64,000 nt of DNA from Anthoceros angustus (GCA_010909165.1 MU008163.1:1984001-2048000), one strand, 5' to 3'. Positions 31,059-60,698 are shown, numbered from the stretch's first letter. Notes: generated from the sequence alone by a model not told the origin. Numbers and translations are program-made.

Positions 31059-33464
31059 CTACAAGTCTGCGAGCCGTTCATTTTCCCGCCGTAGATGCCG
31101 TACCTCCTCTATTAGTTCAGCCTGGAAATCTTGCATGTTTTTCATGGCAGCTTTCATCTCCAGGTGTTGAATGTGGAACTGGCGAAGTAGCTCAAGGTGG
31201 AGGTTCTGGACGTCTTCATGAATGGCTTGCTGTACCGCTCCAAGAGATTCATCTAGAGCTCGCTGCACTAGCTGGAGAGCAAAGGAAGGGGTCTCAGGCT
31301 GAGAATGACCTTGGGGTAGAGAGCTAATTGAGGAGACCTGTCCGACTGGAAGAGGAAGTTGCCGGGGCGAAGTTCCGGCGTCAGCTTTCGTTTCACGTGA
31401 GACGTCGCTTCCTTTTGCCAAATCCGCAGCCGATTTCGGTTTGCCGCTATCATCCTTGCTCTGGGGTGGAGGAGAGAGAGAGTTGACTGCTGTCACGCCA
31501 TCTCCAGCCTCAAGCGATTTCGCTTGCGAGAAATTCGGCTGCAACCTTTTGTCCCCAGAAGCCAGCTTTCTTGAAGAGACCATGAGCCTGTGATTCCCTA
31601 GTGATCCTGCAGGATCCACAGATCGCAACCCTTCAAATCCTGTCGGAGACCCGCTTGCTGAAGACAGATGTTTCAGACCTAAAGCCAGCCGAGATGAAGA
31701 CAAGTCCAGGTCCGAGTTCTGTGCTCCGTTAAAAGCGGCCCAGGGGGCTGCACCATTTGCTGCAGGCGTTCCCAATGAATCAAGCTCAGGAGGGGCTGAC
31801 TCTCCAGAATTAGCCACTTGAACGGGAGTCGAATATGCAAACCTTGAAATCAGGTGCCCTTGAATCGGAGCTGCACGAAACGTACCCCTGTCAGCTGGTG
31901 CATCCCCTCCCCAAGCCTCTGGAGGAGTTGCTGAAGGCGATCTTGCCAGAAGACCCATAAGTCTGCCCGTTCCAGGTGACGAGGGGGAAATCTGTGCTGG
32001 CGTGCCGTCCTTCTGTGCTGAACGGGGCTCGTCCTTGAAGTCTTCAAAGGTGGAAAGCCTCCTTATGCCAGGTGATTTCAGTCCCCAAGAAGACTTCTTC
32101 GCTCCATCCCCTGATGGTAAGTCTCTCCTAAAGTCATAGTTCTCATCCCACGAATTGAGCATGGAGGGCATGATCGGCTGCACATCAACCAGAGGCGAAA
32201 ACACCTCCATGTCATCATCTCCACCGAAAGCAGCTCGAGGGGTCTGCAGTCGTGTCACACCTCCGTTTGTCCACGGCTGGCTAGCCCTACTCCCGTCCAC
32301 AGCTGACCTTCCAGAGACTGCACCCGGCGCAGTTCCAGCACCATCCTCAGCACCCCTTCCTGCATTTCGCAAACTGGCAGCCGAAGTTAGAGAACGTCCT
32401 CTTGTGCTAGGAACTGTGGCTGGAAGAGGATCCGGCATGAGAACAGAGTCTTCTGTTGTGACAGATCCAAGTAAAGCGGTATCCAGATTGCAGTTGGCCT
32501 CATTCACAGCAACGGGGTTGCTACGCTGCCAGCTCAAGCTCGAAACAGCATCGGAGGCACCGTAAGCTCGAAGGATAGTGAACGGCTGCAGCTTGCCCCT
32601 AATGTCATAAAACACCACCCGACCACTGTTTGTACCAGCTGCTAAAACTCCACCATCATCCCTGAACGCCAAGGACGAAAACGGTGCTTCACACGGAACA
32701 CAATGCACAGGTTTCTTCAATCCGGGGTCAAAAGCATACAGCTTCTTGTCCAAACCAACGCTGACAATGAGCTTATCATTGCTCGGCGAGAAGCAAACCC
32801 CCGTAGTCGGAGCCAAATGCTGCTTCATCCAAGACATCTTCGGACTCCGACCCGTGGTATCCCAGAGGTGAACCGAGCCATCGTCCCCAGCTGTCACCAA
32901 CATGTGCCTGCTAACCCGCGAATACTCCAACACTCTCAGCACCTGGTTGTTCGGATCTTTCAGCTCAGCTGTGCGGGTGCCTGATGCCAGATTATGCAGA
33001 ATAAGATCTCCGCTCAAGCTCACAGACGCCAGCTGCTCATCCCTGCAATTATATCCTACGCCTGTGATCGTCTCCACATGACCTTTCAACCACTTGATGC
33101 ACCGCTTCCGCTGGAGGTCCCACACTCTCACCACTTTCCCTGAGCCACCTGAACACATGTATCTTGAACCCTTGCTGCTGAAACATATGGCCAGAATGGA
33201 CTCGTCGGCGGCCTCCACCGTGTCTGTGTTCAGCTCTGGCATAATTCCTACGGATTGTCCATTCTTCATCCATAGCGAGATCTTGCGGTCTTCTCCGGCA
33301 CTGGCAATCACCAAATTGGTGTGGTTCCATCGGACGCAGTTCACCAGCAACCCTGGGGTCGGCGTGTGCTGGAAAGCGCAAGGGTCTCCCCGCTCCACCG
33401 ACACGTCGAAGAGCTTCACGGTGTCGCCTCCGCACGCCGCGAGCAGGGACTGCGTCTGCGCCAT
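31059..33464 (-). CDS. NEDD1: NEDD1/GCP-WD gamma-tubulin ring complex targeting WD40 protein, 801 aa, single exon
   Basis: [59 protein letters not shown], and C-terminal [33 protein letters not shown] coiled coil. Confidence 0.95.
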
Positions 33465-40359: not shown

Positions 40360-42954
40360 AATTAATAAAGTATTTCATCACTCCCACTCACTTTGAAGTA
40401 GGGCAGAAAAGAAGCTAGAAAATGAGCCTAATATGGCAACATAATTCCCACTGCAAAATAAGATGTTCAGCTAAAAAGGAAGACCAAAAGTAAGTCAGTA
40501 AACCAAAGAAATAACTTCTAATAGCTTAATAGGGATAACTGCCAAAATATAATAGGGCAATATCCTATAAGGAAAATAGGCTAAAAGGTAAATAGGCCAA
40601 GGGATAATAGGTGAGTGTCCCGCCTCTTCTGCAAGCCTGTACATGAAAAAAGGTTGCAGCTTTCAAAGTTTGACAGGTGCAGGGGCTTTGGCAAGGAGGA
40701 AGCAACCCCGACCGCGCACGGGGGATATGGCGCGAGGTCGCCATCGTCGCTGCAGGAGGGAGATGCTGTCAACGCGCCGTCATGCACGTGTCGCCTATGA
40801 CTCGCGTGCGTCCTTACAGCAGCGGGATGTTCTTCCCAAAGTCCTGTTGTAGAAGATGCCTTCCACCAAATACGGGGGATACGCGTTCCTATTGTCTCCA
40901 CAAGAGCACCACTAGAAGCTACGAATAACATTGCGAAGAGTACGTACATGACACTATCAAAGGAGCTCATATCCTCTATATCTCCAAGATGTAAAAGATG
41001 AGAAGCTTTGGCATACAACATAGTCTGAAGCATAAAGTAAATGACAGGATCCATATATAAAAAATAATACTAAATAATAATAAGTGTAATATGAAGGAAA
41101 TATGAAGTACTCAACACAAAGAAACACAAGTACATAGGGGCTTGGTTGCCTTCATGTAGGCAGTCTGGAGAAGGAAAAGGATTGGTTCCGCTTTATGAAG
41201 AGCGGGTTGGGCAAGGGAAGCAAAGGGCGGTGCCGGGTTGCCCTGGCTGTACAGCGGGTGTTCCTAAACCAGGCCATAAAATTAACGAGAAAAAGGCATT
41301 CACACAAATAACGAGTATGACACCTTTGCGTTCCTTTCACCTATACACGAGGATTTTATGGACGGAGGCACAACTCAATGTAAGTAGGCCTTGAGTCGGT
41401 GAGGAGCTGGGGTGTGCAGATTTAAATGTTTAATGGTCATAGTTTTATATAACTATTTTAAAATTTATATTTAAATTTGATTGGCTAAAATTTTTAAATT
41501 TTTTTATAAAATTTATATAAATACTTTTAGATACAGACAGAAATCCCATAACAATTGAAAGCCCCGCAATATGGCACTAACAATTGGCAGGACAAAGGGG
41601 TGGCAACTTCGCACACTACCGAGTAAAAGGAGCAGGGAATGAATGACACCCCATCCCAGCACTGATCCGTGCCAAGCACACTTATAGACTATGGAGAGTT
41701 CCCATGAACCCCATTAGTATATGGATGTCAGTCCTCGAAGGAAGGAAGGACTTGATTGTCCATAGGAGCTATCCTTGTCCATAGAGGCTATCCTGTGATG
41801 AGAGGACGTAAACTCAAAGCATTTGCGTATCCATGGACCAAGCATACCATCCGTGTACATACGCCTACGATTCTCTGCTACGGTTTCTCGAAACGATCGG
41901 TAATGGATAGGATACCTAACGGACGGATCGCTCATGCACGCGAAGCGCGGGCATCTTCCCGTACCGTCATTTACGGGCCTGGGTTCGGCGATGGCTCTGC
42001 AGGTGGGCTGGACATGGCTGTGCAATCTCTGGCGATCCGTTATCTTCGAATTGGAGATGCACATGTACATATATCTATCACCTCCACACGTACCGTTGTA
42101 CAGATGTAGCCGTCATTCATGCCAGAAGCTCCTGGAGGGCACTGGCAGGTGAGAATAAAAGGTGTGGAACCCTGGTTGCCTTCCCTCACGTGGTGTTTCC
42201 ACGCCATCTCACCTGCCCCTCATGTCTGGTGGACAACGACGAAGAATATCTTATTATTTACAAAGGAACGCCAGCCTAAGTGGACTGCAGCTGAAAGTCT
42301 CCATTCCATGCCTTTCCCTCTCCCGAATGTTGACGCTTGCTACTTGCGGGACCGAATAGTCTGATGAGCCGCGGTTGTTGACTGCCTACTACACCCAAAT
42401 GCAGATGCGGATGCGGATCAACGTGACTCACATTTGTACCGTGCCGGATTTGACAGCCCACCGGAGCCGAAGATGACCAAAAGCTTTCTTCCACCTGGCT
42501 GACAGGGGCCATCTCTGCAGAGCAGATTTTTCATTCGCCCAACAATCAGAGGCCCTGGAAAATATTTTCCTGTGTCCTGGGGGTCGCAGAGATGAAAGCT
42601 GTGAATGCTAAAATTATCCCAAGCACGACTCTTGACAATCCTGCCCACTGCCCAATTACAGTGACTACCGTCAACGTCGTCAGCAGACTATTCGTGGGCG
42701 ACGGCACCTGGATCGGGGGAAGCTGCTCTCGAATTGCTCTATGATTTATCAGATCGTTGATGTAGAGGAGTGTGAAGAGCCCGGTTTCCTAGACGCCAGC
42801 CCAGATCTCTCTCCGTTGCGGATTCTCTCTCCCCGGGAGCCTTCCATGATTGCTGGCTTGCCCGGGAGTCTGGAGGGAGGAGCTCGCAGACTGGGAGAAC
42901 CCAGCTCTCTTGTCGCATTGATGCGAAGGGTGTGAAAGCGCTTGGTGGGTGCTC

Positions 42955-45900
42955 ATGGCTCTGCAGCTTTATGCTCCCTCTGTTGCGATCTGGGAGACGC
43001 GGCGCGGTGTCGCTACCCCCGCCCCGGGCCAGCTCACGGGGAATTGGAGGGTGCGGGGCGGGGAGGTGGGATTCTCGGGGAGGCACAGGAATCCGATCCG
43101 GGTGGCTCGGTCCAGGAGGTCGAAGGTGGTGTGGGTGTCGGCGTCCGTGGCAGAGCGCGCGGCTGTAGCCCCCTCCAGGACGACCAGGTCGGGGCCCCTC
43201 ACATGGAAAGTGTCGATCTCCGCCGTGAAGCCCACAAGGCCGAATCCCGTGGGCGAGATGCTGCTGGCCCTGGAGGATTACGTCTTCAAGAGGCACATCG
43301 AGGTGGCCTTCATCAGCGAGGAAGTGGATCCCGGTACGTGCCTTGCCCAGAAATGCTGTATTGCTGAGAACGCTTGAGATTATCTGAGACCCAATGCCCT
43401 GGATTGATCAGCCACCGGGAGCGGGAGGAGGAGCGTGGCTCGCCCGGTCACCAATTTCTGGGAGAAGACCTTCGTGGGTGGCAAGGTGGAGTACAACGCT
43501 GAGGTGATGGTGGATGAGGATTTCGGGGTGCCAGGGGCGATCAGCCTGCTCAACAAGCATTCCTCGGAGTTCTTCGTGGCCTCAGTGAGCCTCGTGCCCG
43601 AATCGCCGCTGGCCAAACCCATCTACCTCAGCGCGCAGTCGCACATTCACAGCACCAAGGACTGCCCCGATCCCCGGATCATCTTCTCAAACAAGGTTTG
43701 GTTTGCTAGCTCATGGCACCTTGCGTGCCTGGAAATCCTCTGGTTGCCAGGCTTTGAGTGATTTGATCCTGAGCGTGCGTGCTGGTGGGTGCAGCCGTGT
43801 CTGCCTCAGGACACGCCGGAGGGGCTGGTGGCGGAGCGGGAGAAGGAGCTCGGCGTGCTCAGAGGAGATGGCAGCGGGGAACGCAAGTACTGGGAGCGCG
43901 TTTACGACTACGATACGTATAACGATCTGGGGAACGTGGATTTTGATTCCAAGCTCAAGAGGCCGGTGCTGGGGAACAAGGATTTGCCGTATCCCAGGAG
44001 GACGAGGACCGGCCGCCGGCCATCTAGAGGAGGTGACATTTGGAGTGAGAATTTTGTGGGCGGGCATTGGCAGGTCGGACTCCGAGTGTTTCTGAAATGG
44101 GCGTCTGTGGGTGCCTCCCTGCAGATCCGTGTCAGGAGAGCCAGACGATGGGGATCAAAAGAAACTACATTCCCAGAGACGAGAACTTTGAGGAGGTGAA
44201 GGGGTTCGAGTTCGTTGCGGATGCCCTGAGGGGAGTGGTGCTGGCCCTCATCCCGGCGGTTCAGACCGCGCTGACAGACACGCCCACCGAGTTCGACAGG
44301 CTGGATGATGTCGATGACTTGTACGTGGGCGACAATGGTGTGCCCAAGACCTTCATGAATAGGATTGGGAAGTGGACTGGCTATTGGACCAAGTATCCGA
44401 TTCCGCAGCTGCTAGTGGGTGAGTCGAAGCGTGGTGGATGGAATGCGGGTGCGGGTTTTTTGGGTTGTGGTGAGCTGGGATTTGGTGCTGATGGCTTATT
44501 CTTTTCTCTCTTTGGATTGGTGGGTATTCGCAGGAGATAAGCTGAGGTGGACCAGAGACGATGAGTTTGGGAGGCAGATTTTGGCAGGGATGAATCCTAT
44601 GGTTGTGCAACGGCTCAAGGTATGGGGTGGTTTTCGTTTTGGTGGCTGATGGGCAAGGTGGGTGCTGCATCAACGTATGTATGTGTGAGTTATGGTTGTG
44701 TTGTTGGGTAATGGTTTAGGTTTTTCCGCACAAGAGTTCTCTGGACGAGGCTGAGTATGGGCCCAGTACGTCTACCATCACGGCCGAGCACTTGGAGAAG
44801 AACCTCCAAGGCCTGACAGTGGAGCAGGTATGTGGTTGCTTGGAATCGTGGTTGAGAAGCTAGAATAAAAGCAGCAGCTCGAAGGAGTAAAATGTTAGTT
44901 GAGGAAGGATGAAGGTGCTGATGGGTTTGAGGTTTGCAGGCTATGGAGCAGAACAGGCTGTACTTCGTGGACTACCACGACGACGTCCTGCCGTTTGTGA
45001 ACAGTTTTAGGAGTATGGGGGATGGGAGGAAAGTATACGCGCCTTTGGTTATCCTGTTCTACACTTTGGAGGGTGCCTTCAAGCCTGTGGCCATCGAGCT
45101 CAGCCTTCCTCCTCCAGAGGCTGGGGGAAGGGGGCTGAAGAGGGTCTTCACCCCTGGAACGGATGCAACCAGTTCCTGGCTATGGCTGTTTGCCAAGATC
45201 CACTTTTCCACGATCGACTTGGCTTTCCACGAACTGTACAGCCACTGGTGAGGATTCTCATTGTCTGGAAGGCAGGCCTGCATGTCTACAACTGGTGCAC
45301 TGTCCTCACGGAAGGGAAGCTTTGCAATGCCTGCAGGGTCAGGTCCCACGCTGTTACGGAGCCTTACATCATCGCCTCCAACAGGCACTTGAGCGCAATG
45401 CACCCCGTGTACAAGCTGCTTCGCCCTCATTTCCGCTACACCATCGAGATGAACAGCGTCGGGAGGAAGACGCTGATTGCTTCAGGCGGCATCATCGAGC
45501 GGTGCGTGTTCACCGGCAAGTACTCCATGCAAATCGGTGCCCTCATGTACGGGAAGAAATGGAGGTTCGACCAGGAGAACTTTCCTGCAGATCTGGTGGC
45601 CAGGTATGCCGCCCAGCAGTTCCTTCAAATTTCCTTCATGAACTCTTAATTGCCGCTCACCCATCCCATCCTACCCTATCCGGGTGTGCAGAGGCATGGC
45701 CGAGTGGGATCCCCTGGCTCCTCAAGGCGTGAAGTTGCTGCTGGAAGACTACCCTTTTGGAGCCGATGGGCTGCTCCTGTGGGGGGCCATCAAGGAGTTC
45801 GTGCAGGACTACGTCTTCCTCTACTATTCTGACAGTGTCAAGGTGAAAGGCGATTTCGAGCTCCAGGCGTGGTGGGAGGAGATCAGAACGGTGGGGCATG

Positions 45901-46442
45901 CCGACAAGGCACACGAGCCTTGGTGGCCTGAGCTCAACACCAAAGAGGACCTCGTGAACGTGCTATCCACCATGATCTGGGTGTGCTCCGCCCACCATGC
46001 ATCAGTGAACTTCGGGCAGTACACTTACGGAGGATTTATGCCCAACAGGCCCTGCAACGCAAGGCGCTACATCCCGCAAGAGGGAGAACCGGAGTGGGAG
46101 GAATTTCTGGCACACCCAGACAGATTCCTGCTCAGCATGCTGCCAGACCAGCCGGAGTCGACGGTCCAGATGCTGGTGACGGCGTCTCTGGCGACTCATG
46201 CCGGAGACGAGGAATATTTGGGCTTCAGACGGGACCACTGGACAGCAGACGAGAAGGCTATCAAGCTCAGCAACAAGTTTGCCAAAGCCTTGGAGGCCAT
46301 CCAAGGGGTATTTGAAAGCAGGAACCAAAATCCCAAGAACAAATTGCGGTTTGGAGCTGGCGTCCTCCCCTACCAACTCCTTTATCCCAAATCTACCCCT
46401 GGATGTACAGGGCGAGGTGTACCCAATAGCATTTCCGTGTAG
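42955..46442 (+). CDS. LOX: Lipoxygenase (PLAT plus catalytic domain), about 9 exons, transit-peptide-like N-terminus
   Basis: [36 protein letters not shown]. Iron ligands [21 protein letters not shown] and C-terminal GVPNSISV*. Confidence 0.95.
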
Positions 46443-47030
46443 ACCCATAAACCTTGTACACACAGGAGGAACGATACCACAGCAGTGCAATTCAACAGTT
46501 ATTTTAGCTAAACATCGTAGAACTAACAGTTCGGCATTCCAAATTTCAAACTCCATGTCGCCTGTGAACACCCATAAACATGACTGGATGGTCAAAATCT
46601 TTCTGCCAACATGGCAAAGCTACCTAACAGGTGTCTGGATTATCTTGCCAGCAAACGGTAATCTCGGTTACCAGCCAGCTAGAGGCAGCTGAGAAGAATC
46701 TCCGATCCCTTCTCTTCACACAAGGAGATCAAGTTCTAAACCGTCTTGGAAGGTGGGCTTGACCTGATAGCAAGGCCTTCCAGATTAAATCTACAATCAA
46801 TGGAGTATTACAATGGCACCAACACAAAACTTACAATTGTCGATGCACTAAGCCAGGGAGCTCATTGACGTCCACTGAGAGGGTCGACGCTGCACAGTGG
46901 CCACTTAAGGATGGCCGTATGGAAACTCTCCGTGAAGGAACCTGATCCAAGCCAGCAGGTCAAGACTCGCACCCGACAACAAAGGCTAACCAACTGCTGG
47001 ACATAACCACCAGCTTGCAGATTTGTAAAG

Positions 47031-50000
47031 TTACAAATGTTCGTCCTGCGCAACTGACTGGTCATAGTCACTCCGCCAATAATTAACATCATTATAATCA
47101 GCAATCCCTACTCCATCCTGAGACCTAGCCTCTGCGTCTTTCTCAAGAGCTGCTCCCACATGTGGCAAAATTGGACCGGCTTCTCCCACGATGCCTTCCT
47201 TCAACGCCTTTTCCATTGCTTTGGCAGTACCATCTGGTTCCACTCCCACAAACTTCACAGGGCTTCCGAACAAACTCTCCCCTACCTTGGGGCCTCCAGG
47301 ACCTTCGTCTTTATGGTTTTCCAAGATGGGGGCTGAACTAACATCTGGAAAATCACTAGCACCAGGGTCTGCACTGCCTTCGAAAACTACCACTCGCTCC
47401 AACAGATCAGAGTTGGAGGTCTCCACAGGCTCCATGGAACCTCCAAATCTTGAATCAAAGGGATTGTCGAAAGGATTATTCTCACCAAGTGAATCTCTGC
47501 CTGATGTTCCCACAACATCCGCAGACTTCACAGAAAATGGATATGGATTCCGTTCATCCAACTGGAACAATGATAGACTATCTATCAACCCAACCTTTTG
47601 GAGATCATTTGAAAGATCCTGGACAGAATGGAGATTTGTGTCCCTGTTATGACCAAGCGCATCATCTTCTTGATCATCAAAATGAGCGTCAAAACCGCTA
47701 GAGAAAATATGATGGCTTGAGGACGTAGCTGTATCCACAAGGTCATCATCTTCACAAACCACCACTTCATCATCACTGCTGCTGCCACCGCTGCTATTAG
47801 GTGACGACGTCAGATTTTGGCCATCTTCACGAGAAGACAGAAAAAAGGGGGACAGTGACCAGCCAGGGTTGTTCCCAAACAGGCTGTCTTTCCTACACAC
47901 AACGAGAAAACCCCCATCACCCAAGAGTACCGGCAAGCTGGAGTGCAAGAGAACAGAGCTATTAGGACAAACTGTCAGGCATCCTATCACCCAGCCACTG
48001 TGTACTAACCACTCGACGTACAGAGCACAGATGAGTAACAGAGTACAGAAAAGTTACACACTCAGTAGCTTGAACCTACCTTTCAATTCCATCAGTACGA
48101 TGATATGGAGCAATGACCACTTCTTGCTCCTCATCAAAGAACATTTCCTGTACGTTGCCCAGCAATCAGAAACATACAAACTAATTCCATACCAACACCT
48201 ACAAGCAAAAGATTCCAGCTCCTAACAGATTGATGGACATCAAATATTCAAGAGACGAATAACATCCACCAACTCACATTTTCTCCATTTGCTCCAGGGC
48301 CCTGCAGAAAGGAAAAGAAAAAAGCATGAGGACAGGCTGTACATGCTTCACCCTTCTCTGAACCGAGCACACCCTGCCACTTCAAATATTCTGTTCCTCA
48401 TTTAACACATTGCACCAGTAACCACATACCTCTTCTACATCCTCATTGTCGAACATATCTGTGGTGCAATACACTTCACGAGTTAAGTTGTTGGTCATGG
48501 TGGAGATATCATAATCCCGCTCACGAAAATCGTCCTCATCACTATCAGCTCGGCGATCTATGGCTGTTGGCCGCCTACATTCCACAACAAGAATGTCAGC
48601 ACCTCCAAGACAGCACCAGCCACAGCACATAGAAACAGAATTTTCTGCAGTACAAAGCCAGCAGGAACCCGCTTCCCCTTCTTGTGTCGGTGAACCTTGT
48701 AAATCACTCACCCACAATTCCAATTGTATACATTCTCGATGCTATTACGGTCGGTAAGAGTACTAGTGACCCATTCGCCCCACTTTGGATTTGCCTGTTC
48801 AAGAAATAACATTGTAATCTATGATTTGTCATTCACAAACAACAGCAAAACATTCCTATTCGTAGAGACAAGAGAGAAGTCCAACCAGAAACTCCCAGAC
48901 ACACAAAATGCAAAAGTCAAGCAGGAAATGGCTTTTCGTGGCCAGGTCCAGATTAACTGGGCCAACGAGAAATGCTTCCCCTCTCCAAAGATGGGGAACA
49001 AAGTCACCAGAACTCAAAGTCACCAGAAATCAAGTTCTCAGTCACATCCACTCACCAGAATTCAAATAGATTATCTGCATGGTTAGATCACGGAACAACG
49101 TTGGCACACAAACCTGAAGATGCGCTTGTATCAAAGGGCCGGTGCTCTCAGCTAGCTTATTTGCAATTCTTGTTAGATGACCCATATTACCTATCCTTAT
49201 CTGACGTTTTCCTGGCGATACCTTGGGCTAACAAGACAAAGTTCAAAAAGTTAGCACTTCCAGAAGGCTCAGAACTGAAATAAGCTGCCAACCCACTGAT
49301 GGCATAGTCAGAGGAGGACAAAAGGGACGTTGAAGTGGCCTAAGAAGGACAAACCTCTGTGTGTCCCTTGCTCACAAAAGGTTCTTCATCCGCTTGAAGT
49401 AATCTTCCAAGAAAGTCACATTTGATGAACAGGTCATCAATTACTAGTTGCCTGTTACTTACGATACAAGAGTTCAAGATGCTCTCTACATGATGGTGCA
49501 ACATGTTGTTGAAAGGGTAGCTGCAAGGGCCAAAACACAGGTCAACAGAGACTCAAGCCTATTCCAAAGCGTGTCTGAATCCTGTGTAGTCCCACTTTAG
49601 ACTTGCTCAACTTAAACAACCACTTACTCAAAGAAGAGATTGAGGACCATCTCAGTTGCATTCTGACGGACTAGTTCCTGCTGGACTCCATCACTATTAG
49701 TCCTAAACAAGACTGCAATAAATTCGACAACCTGTTGCACCACAAATTGATTCACATGTCAGTACAACAGTTCAGACGCAGTCTCACGCCAATGACAAGC
49801 CTGCCAGAGATACACGTAGCTCCAAAAATGAGAACAGGCACACAGCTCACAGTCAGCCTAACCTTGAGCCTGTGAATTCCAAGAGGGGGTTTCAACTGGC
49901 CATAGGTCGTCGGCAGGATCTGTGCTTCATCACCCGATACATCCAATAACTTGAGCAACTCTCCTGTTGAAGCCAGACATGAGAGCCAACCCTACTCTTG

Positions 50001-58946: not shown

Positions 58947-60698
58947 ATGGAGAGCAGTCGTGGTGCTGCATCCAACTGGATCGTGCGGGATGATGGTGGG
59001 CCTGGCAGGCCGGCTGGATACGATCGGGGCGTTACGGTTGAAACTGTGAGCAAGCTGTGCGAGCTGGGGCAGCTCGATGAGGCAGTGGAGGGCCTTGGAG
59101 TTCTGGTGCAGACAGACTGTGAGGCTCCCAAGTCTCTCTTCTACACAGTCTCAAAGGGATGTTCTAGGGAGAAGGATTTACCTTTATGGCGCCGTGTGCA
59201 TGCCCTGGGGGTGATGAAGGGGTACGAGTCGGACACGTTCTTGTGCAACCACATGGTGCGGGTTTATGCTTCCCGTGCCAGCTTGGAGGAGGCCATGGAC
59301 GTGTTCAGCGCGGTGGAGGAACCGGATGCCTTCACGTGGTCGGCCATCATCTCGGCTCATGTGAAGCAGGGGCGGGACAGGCAGGCCATAGGGCTGTATC
59401 ATCGGATGCGGATGTCGAGTGTGCAGCCGGACGGGCATGTGTTTGTGGCAGCGCTGCAGGCCTGCGCGAGAGGAGCAGATTTGAGGTCGGGGCAGCAGGT
59501 GCATGTGGATGTGATTGCCAGTGGGGTTGAGCCTGATTCGTTTGTGTGCAATTGCCTGGTGGATATGTATGCCAAGTGCGGGAGCTTGGGTGAGGCAAGG
59601 AGAGTGTTCGACCGGTTAGGGCACAAGAATGTTGTCACCTGGACGGCTCTGATTGCAGGATACTCCCAGCAGGGCATGGGGCAGGAGGCTCTGCATCTCT
59701 ACAGGGCCATGCAGGAGGAGGGAGTGGCTGCTCCTAATTCTTTCACTTTCGTGTGCCTCCTGCAGGCGTGTGCTAATGTGGCTGCTCTGCATCTGGGAAG
59801 GCAGCTTCACGCACAGATCAAAACCCTAGGGCTGGAGGCCGAGGTGCTGGTGGCCACCAGCCTGATCAACATGTATGGCAAGTGCGGGAGCATGGAGGAT
59901 GCACAGCTGGTTTTCGATGCCTTGCCGGCAAGAGATGTGGTCACCTGGAGCGCGCTGATCGCAGGCTACACCTGCCAGGGAGCCAGCCAGGTGGTGTTCG
60001 ACCTGGTTCAGAGGATGAGACAGGAAGGCATACAGCCGAACGGAGTCACATTCCTCAGCATACTGACAGTATGCAGCCATGCAGGCCTGGTGGGGAAAGG
60101 GCAAGAGTTCTTCCGGGCCATGAGCAGACAGTACCGGATCCCTCCCACCGTCGGGCACTACACCTGCATGGTGGACCTCCTGGGCAGAGCAGGCCTGCTG
60201 GACGAGTCCCTGGCCTTGGTCAGGGCCATGCCCATCCCCCCTGACGCGGCAGTCTGGCTCACTCTGCTGAACGCCTGCCGAAAGTGGAGCAACACGGAGG
60301 TGGGCCGCCATGCTTTCGACCAAACCGTGAAGCTCGACAAGAAAGACGCCTCAGCGTATGTCCTCATGTCCAACATTTACACCGGTGCCCAGATGTGGGA
60401 GCAGGCGCGGGAGCTGCAGGCGTGGAGGAAGGGCATCGGGGCGTGGAAGCAGCCTGGTCAGAGCTGGTGGACGGACATGGCCGGGCTAGTGCATAGCTTT
60501 CTTGTTGGCGAGCGGAAGCTCCTCGAAGGTGAAGCAAGAATGACGCAGGTCTATCCCATATTGAATGACGAACAATGTGCGCCGCATCTGGGTTCCTTAA
60601 CCTTTAGGCACGTTACTCGACTCAGACGTTGTTTCAGTCATCATCTTTTTCGTTTCAATCCATCATTTTGGGGTCCATACTCGTTTTTGAAATTGTAG
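58947..60698 (+). CDS. PLS-class PPR RNA-editing factor with E domains and a WW-type PG box; DYW deaminase truncated
   Basis: Repeated NCLVDMYAKCGSL, VVTWTALIAGY, FVCLLQAC, then HYTCMVDLLGRAG, WLTLLNACRKW, AYVLMSNIY and KQPGQSWWTDMAGLVHSFLVGE. No HxE/CxxC downstream. Confidence 0.93.
   Translation: MESSRGAASNWIVRDDGGPGRPAGYDRGVTVETVSKLCELGQLDEAVEGLGVLVQTDCEAPKSLFYTVSKGCSREKDLPLWRRVHALGVMKGYESDTFLCNHMVRVYASRASLEEAMDVFSAVEEPDAFTWSAIISAHVKQGRDRQAIGLYHRMRMSSVQPDGHVFVAALQACARGADLRSGQQVHVDVIASGVEPDSFVCNCLVDMYAKCGSLGEARRVFDRLGHKNVVTWTALIAGYSQQGMGQEALHLYRAMQEEGVAAPNSFTFVCLLQACANVAALHLGRQLHAQIKTLGLEAEVLVATSLINMYGKCGSMEDAQLVFDALPARDVVTWSALIAGYTCQGASQVVFDLVQRMRQEGIQPNGVTFLSILTVCSHAGLVGKGQEFFRAMSRQYRIPPTVGHYTCMVDLLGRAGLLDESLALVRAMPIPPDAAVWLTLLNACRKWSNTEVGRHAFDQTVKLDKKDASAYVLMSNIYTGAQMWEQARELQAWRKGIGAWKQPGQSWWTDMAGLVHSFLVGERKLLEGEARMTQVYPILNDEQCAPHLGSLTFRHVTRLRRCFSHHLFRFNPSFWGPYSFLKL

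Follow-up and report, generated by a model that had tools for sequence, protein, structure and literature searches.

A transcribed lipoxygenase gene of Anthoceros angustus with glycine at the stereochemical switch, a candidate for R-hydroperoxide formation

The window analysed here is a 64,000-nucleotide stretch of Anthoceros angustus DNA (GCA_010909165.1, MU008163.1:1984001-2048000), and positions are counted from its first letter. It holds an intact, spliced and transcribed nuclear gene for a predicted iron lipoxygenase (LOX), whose nine exons occupy 42955-46442 on the + strand and encode 904 amino acids in a frame that contig alignment and a frame check found open throughout (Table 1). The start codon at 42955 is the first ATG past an in-frame stop at 42919. 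An earlier reading of the same DNA, hereafter the original prediction, had singled the gene out as a candidate R-specific plant LOX, with glycine at the Coffa Ala/Gly switch and valine at the base of its substrate-binding pocket. No second (tandem) LOX copy is present in the 64-kb window.

Table 1. Exons and active-site positions of the lipoxygenase gene, in window coordinates; residue numbers follow soybean LOX-1.
Feature	Position	Strand	Description
Exon 1	42955-43333	+	Basic, non-conserved presequence of ~75-80 amino acids, then start of the putative PLAT region; from contigs X2/X9, frame and composition
Exon 2	43412-43695	+	Putative second half of PLAT/LH2; GT..AG joint; homologous exon in L001-L004
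Exon 3	43795-44032	+	Lipoxygenase domain start, Pfam positions 2-69
Exon 4	44125-44418	+	Lipoxygenase domain, Pfam positions 75-147
Exon 5	44534-44619	+	Lipoxygenase domain, Pfam positions 187-214
Exon 6	44720-44827	+	Lipoxygenase domain, Pfam positions 216-250
Exon 7	44940-45247	+	Ends HELYSH(W); Glu at the Gln495 site, iron ligand His499
Exon 8	45337-45603	+	His504, Gly switch, Leu546, Ile553, Cys556-Val557
Exon 9	45692-46442	+	His690, Asn694, Gln697, Arg707, Leu754, C-terminal Val, TAG stop 46440-46442
Gln495 site	45231-45233	+	Glu
Iron ligand His499	45243-45245	+	
Iron ligand His504	45347-45349	+	
Coffa Ala/Gly switch	45461-45463	+	GGG = Gly, query residue 45, at soybean LOX-1 Ala542
Invariant Leu546	45473-45475	+	Four residues past the switch; soybean LOX-1 alignment
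Pocket-bottom site	45506-45508	+	GTG = Val, query residue 60, at soybean LOX-1 Phe557
Iron ligand His690	45996-45998	+	
Iron ligand Asn694	46008-46010	+	
Arg707	46047-46049	+	Conserved
C-terminal ligand	46437-46439	+	Val replacing Ile839; protein ends at the aligned position

The gene model was read from public contigs aligned to 42700-46700. RNA contig X2 and DNA contig X1 belong to the same organism as the window, and RNA contig X9 and DNA contig X4 to a sister organism that is about 93% alike. Eight joints are common to the spliced RNA contigs X2 and X9; all are GT..AG and their phases are consistent. X2, at a depth of 370, covers all exons with no other letters and no gaps, and X1 has no differing letters. 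The original prediction had allowed for a sequencing error at the glycine codon; since GGG is read without difference in both RNA and DNA, the codon is not an assembly error. In the sister organism, about 5% of the letters in exons 2-8 are different and these exons are gap-free (X9), while the introns diverge more and carry indels, a contrast that resembles a gene under constraint. The larger replacements in X4 fall within introns: 65 nucleotides of intron 2 (43711-43777) are swapped for 67 other letters, and 48 nucleotides of intron 6 (44843-44892) for 17.

These data also bear on the possibility that the glycine is an artefact or that the gene is a decaying pseudogene. X1 and X2 share their sample with the probable source of the assembly and are therefore not fully independent of it, which leaves such a reading some room. 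Against it stand the 904 open codons, the eight canonical introns and the perfect match of X2, the identically spliced orthologue that the sister organism expresses without frame-breaking gaps in exons 2-8, and the presence of the same glycine in two relatives from a different sample (described below). The artefact or pseudogene explanation is thus close to refuted, and the working gene assumed by the original prediction is borne out by its splicing, expression and open frame.

All homology searches were run on single exons. Exons 3-9 cover positions 2-673 of the Pfam lipoxygenase family PF00305 in order, with E-values from 2e-7 to 8e-93. The PLAT match of exon 2 alone (E 0.065) falls below the cut-off, the domain probably being divided between exons 1 and 2; the exons homologous to exon 2 in two related genes, L003 and L004, are called PLAT. 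With exon 8 as the query (window 45329-45604), a phmmer search of the full set of PDB chains yields lipoxygenases of plants, led by 8qdr/8qdq (E 9e-32), and query residues 5-92 match residues 502-588 of soybean LOX-1 (1f8n/1yge/3pzw). Positions 45431-45523 of the + strand translate exactly to the 31-residue peptide quoted in the original prediction. Where the alignments with other soybean LOXs are printed, they contain a single gap, past query residue 70, and because this only gap comes after both sites, glycine falls on Ala542 and valine on Phe557. The soybean LOX-1 alignment and a direct check of the codons therefore agree with the original assignment of both residues.

All five metal ligands are present, comprising three histidines, an asparagine and the C-terminal carboxylate, in keeping with the earlier claim of an intact iron site, and the terminal residue is indeed Val instead of Ile. 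Gln697, Leu754 and Ile553 are conserved. The glutamate at the Gln495 site has a counterpart among the structures: among the soybean LOX-1 entries, exon 7 scores best against 1fgq, which we take to be the Q495E mutant and which has the motif HELMSH, and LOX-3 and 2iuk (another soybean seed lipoxygenase) read HQL. The protein carries both sequence features of an R-type enzyme under the Coffa-Brash rule, glycine at the switch and leucine one helical turn later. According to this rule, Ala directs S and Gly directs R oxygenation, with O2 reaching the other end of the pentadienyl radical, and the effect is coupled to an invariant Leu one helical turn from the switch (PMC13059375).

An exact look-up of the exon-9 open reading frame (ORF) in protein collections gave no match. 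When proteins close in length to exon 9 were searched with its words, two fragments emerged, P0160 and P0161, with 66-67% identity, both from Logan sample SRR33208241, and a word search with the exon-8 ORF returned one fragment with 56% identity. The source organism and its sister seem to be absent from the protein collections. The LOX genes on the contigs of P0160 and P0161 (L001 and L002) are likewise arranged in nine exons and show 56-67% identity to the window gene, and both read EINAIGRKTL(I/V)A, so that the glycine and the RKTL that follows it are kept. Another protein of the same sample, P0164 (gene L003), has the canonical Ala542/Thr556/Phe557, as do the metagenome loci L004-L006. L003:2483-5777 and L001/L002 in SRR33208241 constitute a natural Ala/Gly paralogue pair within one organism. 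The pocket residues of the Gly genes and of these Ala genes are compared in Table 2.

Table 2. Pocket residues of the genes with glycine at the switch and of their Ala-type relatives (soybean numbering).
Position	Gly genes (window, L001, L002)	L003	L004-L006
491	Leu	Ala	Ser
495	Glu	Gln	Gln
497	Tyr	Ser	Val
541	Val/Ile	Ala	Ala
542	Gly	Ala	Ala
556	Cys	Thr	Thr
557	Val (window)/Gln (L001, L002)	Phe	Phe
707	Arg	Lys	Gln
747	Gln	Leu	Leu
751	Thr	Val	Val

Because the three Gly genes share a set of other pocket changes, the switch is, by these alignments, part of a coordinated and conserved remodelling of the pocket. The retention of Gly in the two nearest relatives, together with Ala and Phe in the sister paralogue, points to selection on the glycine and away from a substitution by chance. 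Only the window gene among the three has the C-terminal Val, with L001 and L002 ending in Ile, and it recurs in 3 of about 56 Ala-type cluster representatives (from the scan described below) that reach the end of the protein; by this comparison it is a minor variant.

A pocket altered in this way at Glu495, Tyr497, Gln747, Thr751 and Gly542 could also serve an enzyme whose main job is something other than the production of simple hydroperoxides, such as the formation of bis-allylic hydroperoxides, lyase-like cleavage or epoxy-alcohol chemistry, as has been reported for some bryophyte and cyanobacterial LOXs. The second-sphere change from Gln495 to Glu extends across the whole Gly clade, and a fungal 13R manganese LOX combines Gly at the switch with a C-terminal Val. 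In addition, MpLOX7 forms C6 aldehydes, and side reactions are known in LOXs of non-seed plants (PMC13364333). However, the gene matches standard iron LOXs in its metal ligands and core motifs, the C-terminal Val does not extend to L001 and L002, and such activities have no known sequence signature. We therefore regard a primary role in chemistry of this kind as improbable.

The exon-9 tree unites the window gene with L001 and L002 (support 100/99), and the Ala paralogue P0164/L003 is sister to this clade (support 90-94). The Gly clade and P0164 are in turn sister (97) to 13 representatives that include a protein named 'linoleate 13S-lipoxygenase 2-1, chloroplastic-like' (P0006). By this topology, the window gene is a member of a small lineage-specific subfamily adjoining the seed-plant plastidial (type-2) 13-LOXs. 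With the type-2 13S-LOXs (P0006) it shares a lipoxygenase domain probably preceded by PLAT, an extended N-terminus, the iron ligands, Arg707 and Leu546/Ile553/Leu754, and identity in the catalytic exons is about 50-55%. It differs from them in Gly for Ala542, Val for Phe557, Glu for Gln495 and the C-terminal Val for Ile, and on account of these changes the 13S product of the jasmonate route is not expected. In particular, the combination of Ala542 with a bulky Phe/His557 that marks type-2 13S-LOXs is replaced by Gly and Val.

The position of oxygenation is less readily assigned. The original prediction had noted that a small residue at the Phe557 site is typical of 9-LOXs. Val557 is present, but the relatives have Gln there, so the 9-LOX-like feature is confined to one gene. 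A 9-LOX-like reading is also weakened by residue 556, where Cys stands in place of the Thr that 9-LOXs pair with Val, and by the position of the clade beside the 13-LOXs. The gene does not fit a type-1 linoleate 9-LOX: although Arg707 is present, the Thr-Val pair at 556-557 is replaced by Cys-Val (Cys-Gln in the relatives), the exon-9 tree places the gene beside the type-2 plastidial 13-LOXs, and a basic extension of about 75 amino acids precedes the conserved region. Small residues (Thr/Val) at the pocket bottom characterise plant LOXs with larger pockets and may expose Arg707 to the substrate carboxylate, permitting head-first binding (PMC6587457). With regard to the N-terminus, only residues 82-126 of exon 1 match the relatives, the first 75-80 residues are not conserved, and the first 75 contain 13 Arg/Lys against 3 Asp/Glu. 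The extension that the original prediction had likened to a plastid transit peptide thus exists and its basic composition is suitable, while plastid targeting itself is putative.

The frequency of glycine at the switch was assessed with a HMMER scan of exon 9 over 1.84 billion cluster representatives, none of which is more than 55% identical to the exon. Among the 79 representatives that also span the switch, the residue is Ala in 68, Gly in 6, Ser, Thr and Cys in 1 each, and unreadable in 2. The Gly set comprises LOXs of Adiantum capillus-veneris and A. nelumboides, a LOX cluster of Selaginella moellendorffii, proteins of the green algae Bryopsis and Monoraphidium, and a Hibiscus protein and a Vaccinium fragment, both with less certain alignments. 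On the tree, the Adiantum and Selaginella Gly clades are placed elsewhere than the window clade, and at least six state changes are needed. A single old clade of land-plant Gly LOXs was rejected, since an approximately unbiased (AU) test of the grouping of Adiantum/Selaginella with the window gene, a grouping named after the tree was seen, gave p ~1e-40. Glycine at the switch has, by this analysis, arisen repeatedly in non-seed plants and algae.

The Adiantum (P0019, P0151, P0152) and Selaginella (P0027 cluster) LOXs resemble the window gene in having Gly in the same column, but they form separate clades, keep Phe557 and show different changes elsewhere in the pocket; the 'linoleate 9S-lipoxygenase' names of the Selaginella proteins are automatic and not assay-based. 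In the three Adiantum proteins with Gly542, Gln495 is replaced by Leu, Gln697 by Asn and Arg707 by Ser, residue 541 is Glu and the last residue is Met, so that the second sphere around the metal is strongly altered. Throughout the Selaginella P0027 cluster, the Ile553 site is occupied by Ala and position 556 by Gly, and two of its members, P0157 and P0158, have Asp at the switch, an odd acidic residue in a fatty-acid pocket. The literature searched contained no characterised natural Gly or R LOX from a land plant or hornwort, nor any characterisation of the Adiantum, Selaginella or other LOXs of the Gly set. To our knowledge, all characterised land-plant LOXs make S-hydroperoxides, and the downstream enzymes of plant oxylipin metabolism are understood in that context.

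Two systems in which the function of the glycine has been studied offer points of comparison. The animal and coral R-LOXs (Plexaura homomalla 8R-LOX and 11R-LOX; 3fg1, 2fnq, 3vf1) share with the window gene the Gly and the Leu one turn on, and their chains can be aligned with residues 4-63 of the exon-8 segment. They are very distant in sequence (E ~1e-10 on exon 8, compared with 1e-21 to 1e-32 for plant LOXs), their substrate is arachidonate, they have no N-terminal region of the plant type, and they acquired their Gly independently. The Ala542Gly mutant of soybean LOX-1 offers the same helix position and neighbouring invariant Leu in the scaffold of a plant LOX. There, one residue was altered by engineering in a seed enzyme that is cytosolic and keeps Phe557, whereas the glycine of the window gene is natural, conserved in its clade and joined by some nine further substitutions in the pocket. 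The soybean mutant forms 9R alongside 13S products from linoleate (Coffa et al. 2005, cited in PMC13059375).

In the mechanism proposed for the window subfamily, the Ala that guides O2 towards the pentadienyl radical's S-face end would have been replaced by Gly, accompanied by Leu491, Glu495, Tyr497, Val/Ile541, Cys556, a non-aromatic residue 557, Gln747 and Thr751, with Arg707 and Leu546 kept. By the Coffa-Brash rule, O2 would then reach the other end of the pentadiene and R-configured hydroperoxides would result. If the substrate enters carboxylate-first, as Val557 and Arg707 suggest, the product from 18:2 and 18:3 would be 13R; entry by the methyl end, which esterified plastid lipids would need, would give 9R (11R or 8R from C20 acids). 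Either R product would probably lie outside the 13S/11S hydroperoxide supply of the canonical jasmonate route. Product stereochemistry, position of oxygenation, plastid targeting and pathway role are what we infer for this enzyme from its sequence.

The most serious competitor is an ordinary LOX of S or mixed specificity, in which the Gly is tolerated, as in zebrafish LOX1, because the substrate or the O2 path is shifted by the other changes in the pocket. The many further substitutions in the clade have an unpredictable net effect and leave scope for such an enzyme, and among the plant-type LOXs in which Gly arose several times the literature searched held no characterised example. Documented exceptions to the Ala/Gly rule are the mini-LOXs of Anabaena and Nostoc and zebrafish LOX1; even so, R specificity prevails among the natural Gly LOXs that have been studied, and plant LOXs mutated from A to G acquire R products (PMC13059375). 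The conservation of Gly within the clade, with Ala in the sister paralogue, also fits a functional split. An S or mixed specificity therefore seems unlikely, though less so than a chemistry other than hydroperoxide formation. Overall, we estimate a probability of roughly 0.55 that the window gene and its Gly relatives represent an R-hydroperoxide-forming LOX subfamily beside the type-2 13-LOXs, with a remodelled pocket.

Several observations weigh against or qualify the R-LOX interpretation of this subfamily, in addition to the exceptions just named. Ala-to-Gly mutants often yield mixtures of products. The original prediction described characterised land-plant LOXs as overwhelmingly S-type; glycine at the switch is rare (6 of 79) but not unique, given its independent occurrence in Adiantum and Selaginella. 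Since Val557 is not shared by the relatives, neither substrate orientation nor the position of oxygenation can be called from sequence. The fit of the N-terminal extension to a plastid transit peptide is drawn from composition and tree position, and the trees were quick IQ-TREE runs on about 250 columns of exon 9.

A fuller version of the R-LOX interpretation is more tentative, and we would place it somewhat short of an even chance. The subfamily would be the first natural R-specific LOX subfamily of land plants, a plastid enzyme, in a hornwort-like lineage, which diverged from a canonical 13S paralogue, exchanged Ala for Gly along with coordinated pocket remodelling, and feeds an R-oxylipin branch unused by the CYP74/jasmonate route. 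The long ORFs at 34-58 kb gave no Pfam matches to oxylipin-pathway neighbours (CYP74, AOC, lipase), although split exons could hide such genes.

The window is characterised by short introns and a GC content of about 50%. Convergent with the 3′-end of the LOX gene, a 319-amino-acid ORF lies on the - strand (47031-47990); its product is acidic and Ser-rich and has no Pfam match. The X2 RNA contig is 5.4 kb long and extends about 1.5 kb beyond 46700, and this neighbour may thus be transcribed with an overlapping 3′-end. Two further genes are intronless, and the exact sequences of both are absent from the gene-position collection: a PLS-type PPR protein of 583 amino acids with an E motif (58947-60698, + strand), and a WD40 protein of 801 amino acids (31059-33464, - strand).

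An expressed and conserved subfamily with Gly at the switch, alongside a canonical Ala paralogue, amounts to a natural experiment on the evolution of stereocontrol in a plant scaffold, and the window LOX is a candidate source of new oxylipins in bryophyte-grade plants. If its products prove to be S-configured, it would be a further exception that helps to delimit the Ala/Gly rule. If it is R-specific, R-oxylipin chemistry could be recurrent and overlooked in non-seed plants, with glycine at the switch having arisen independently in ferns, lycophytes and green algae.

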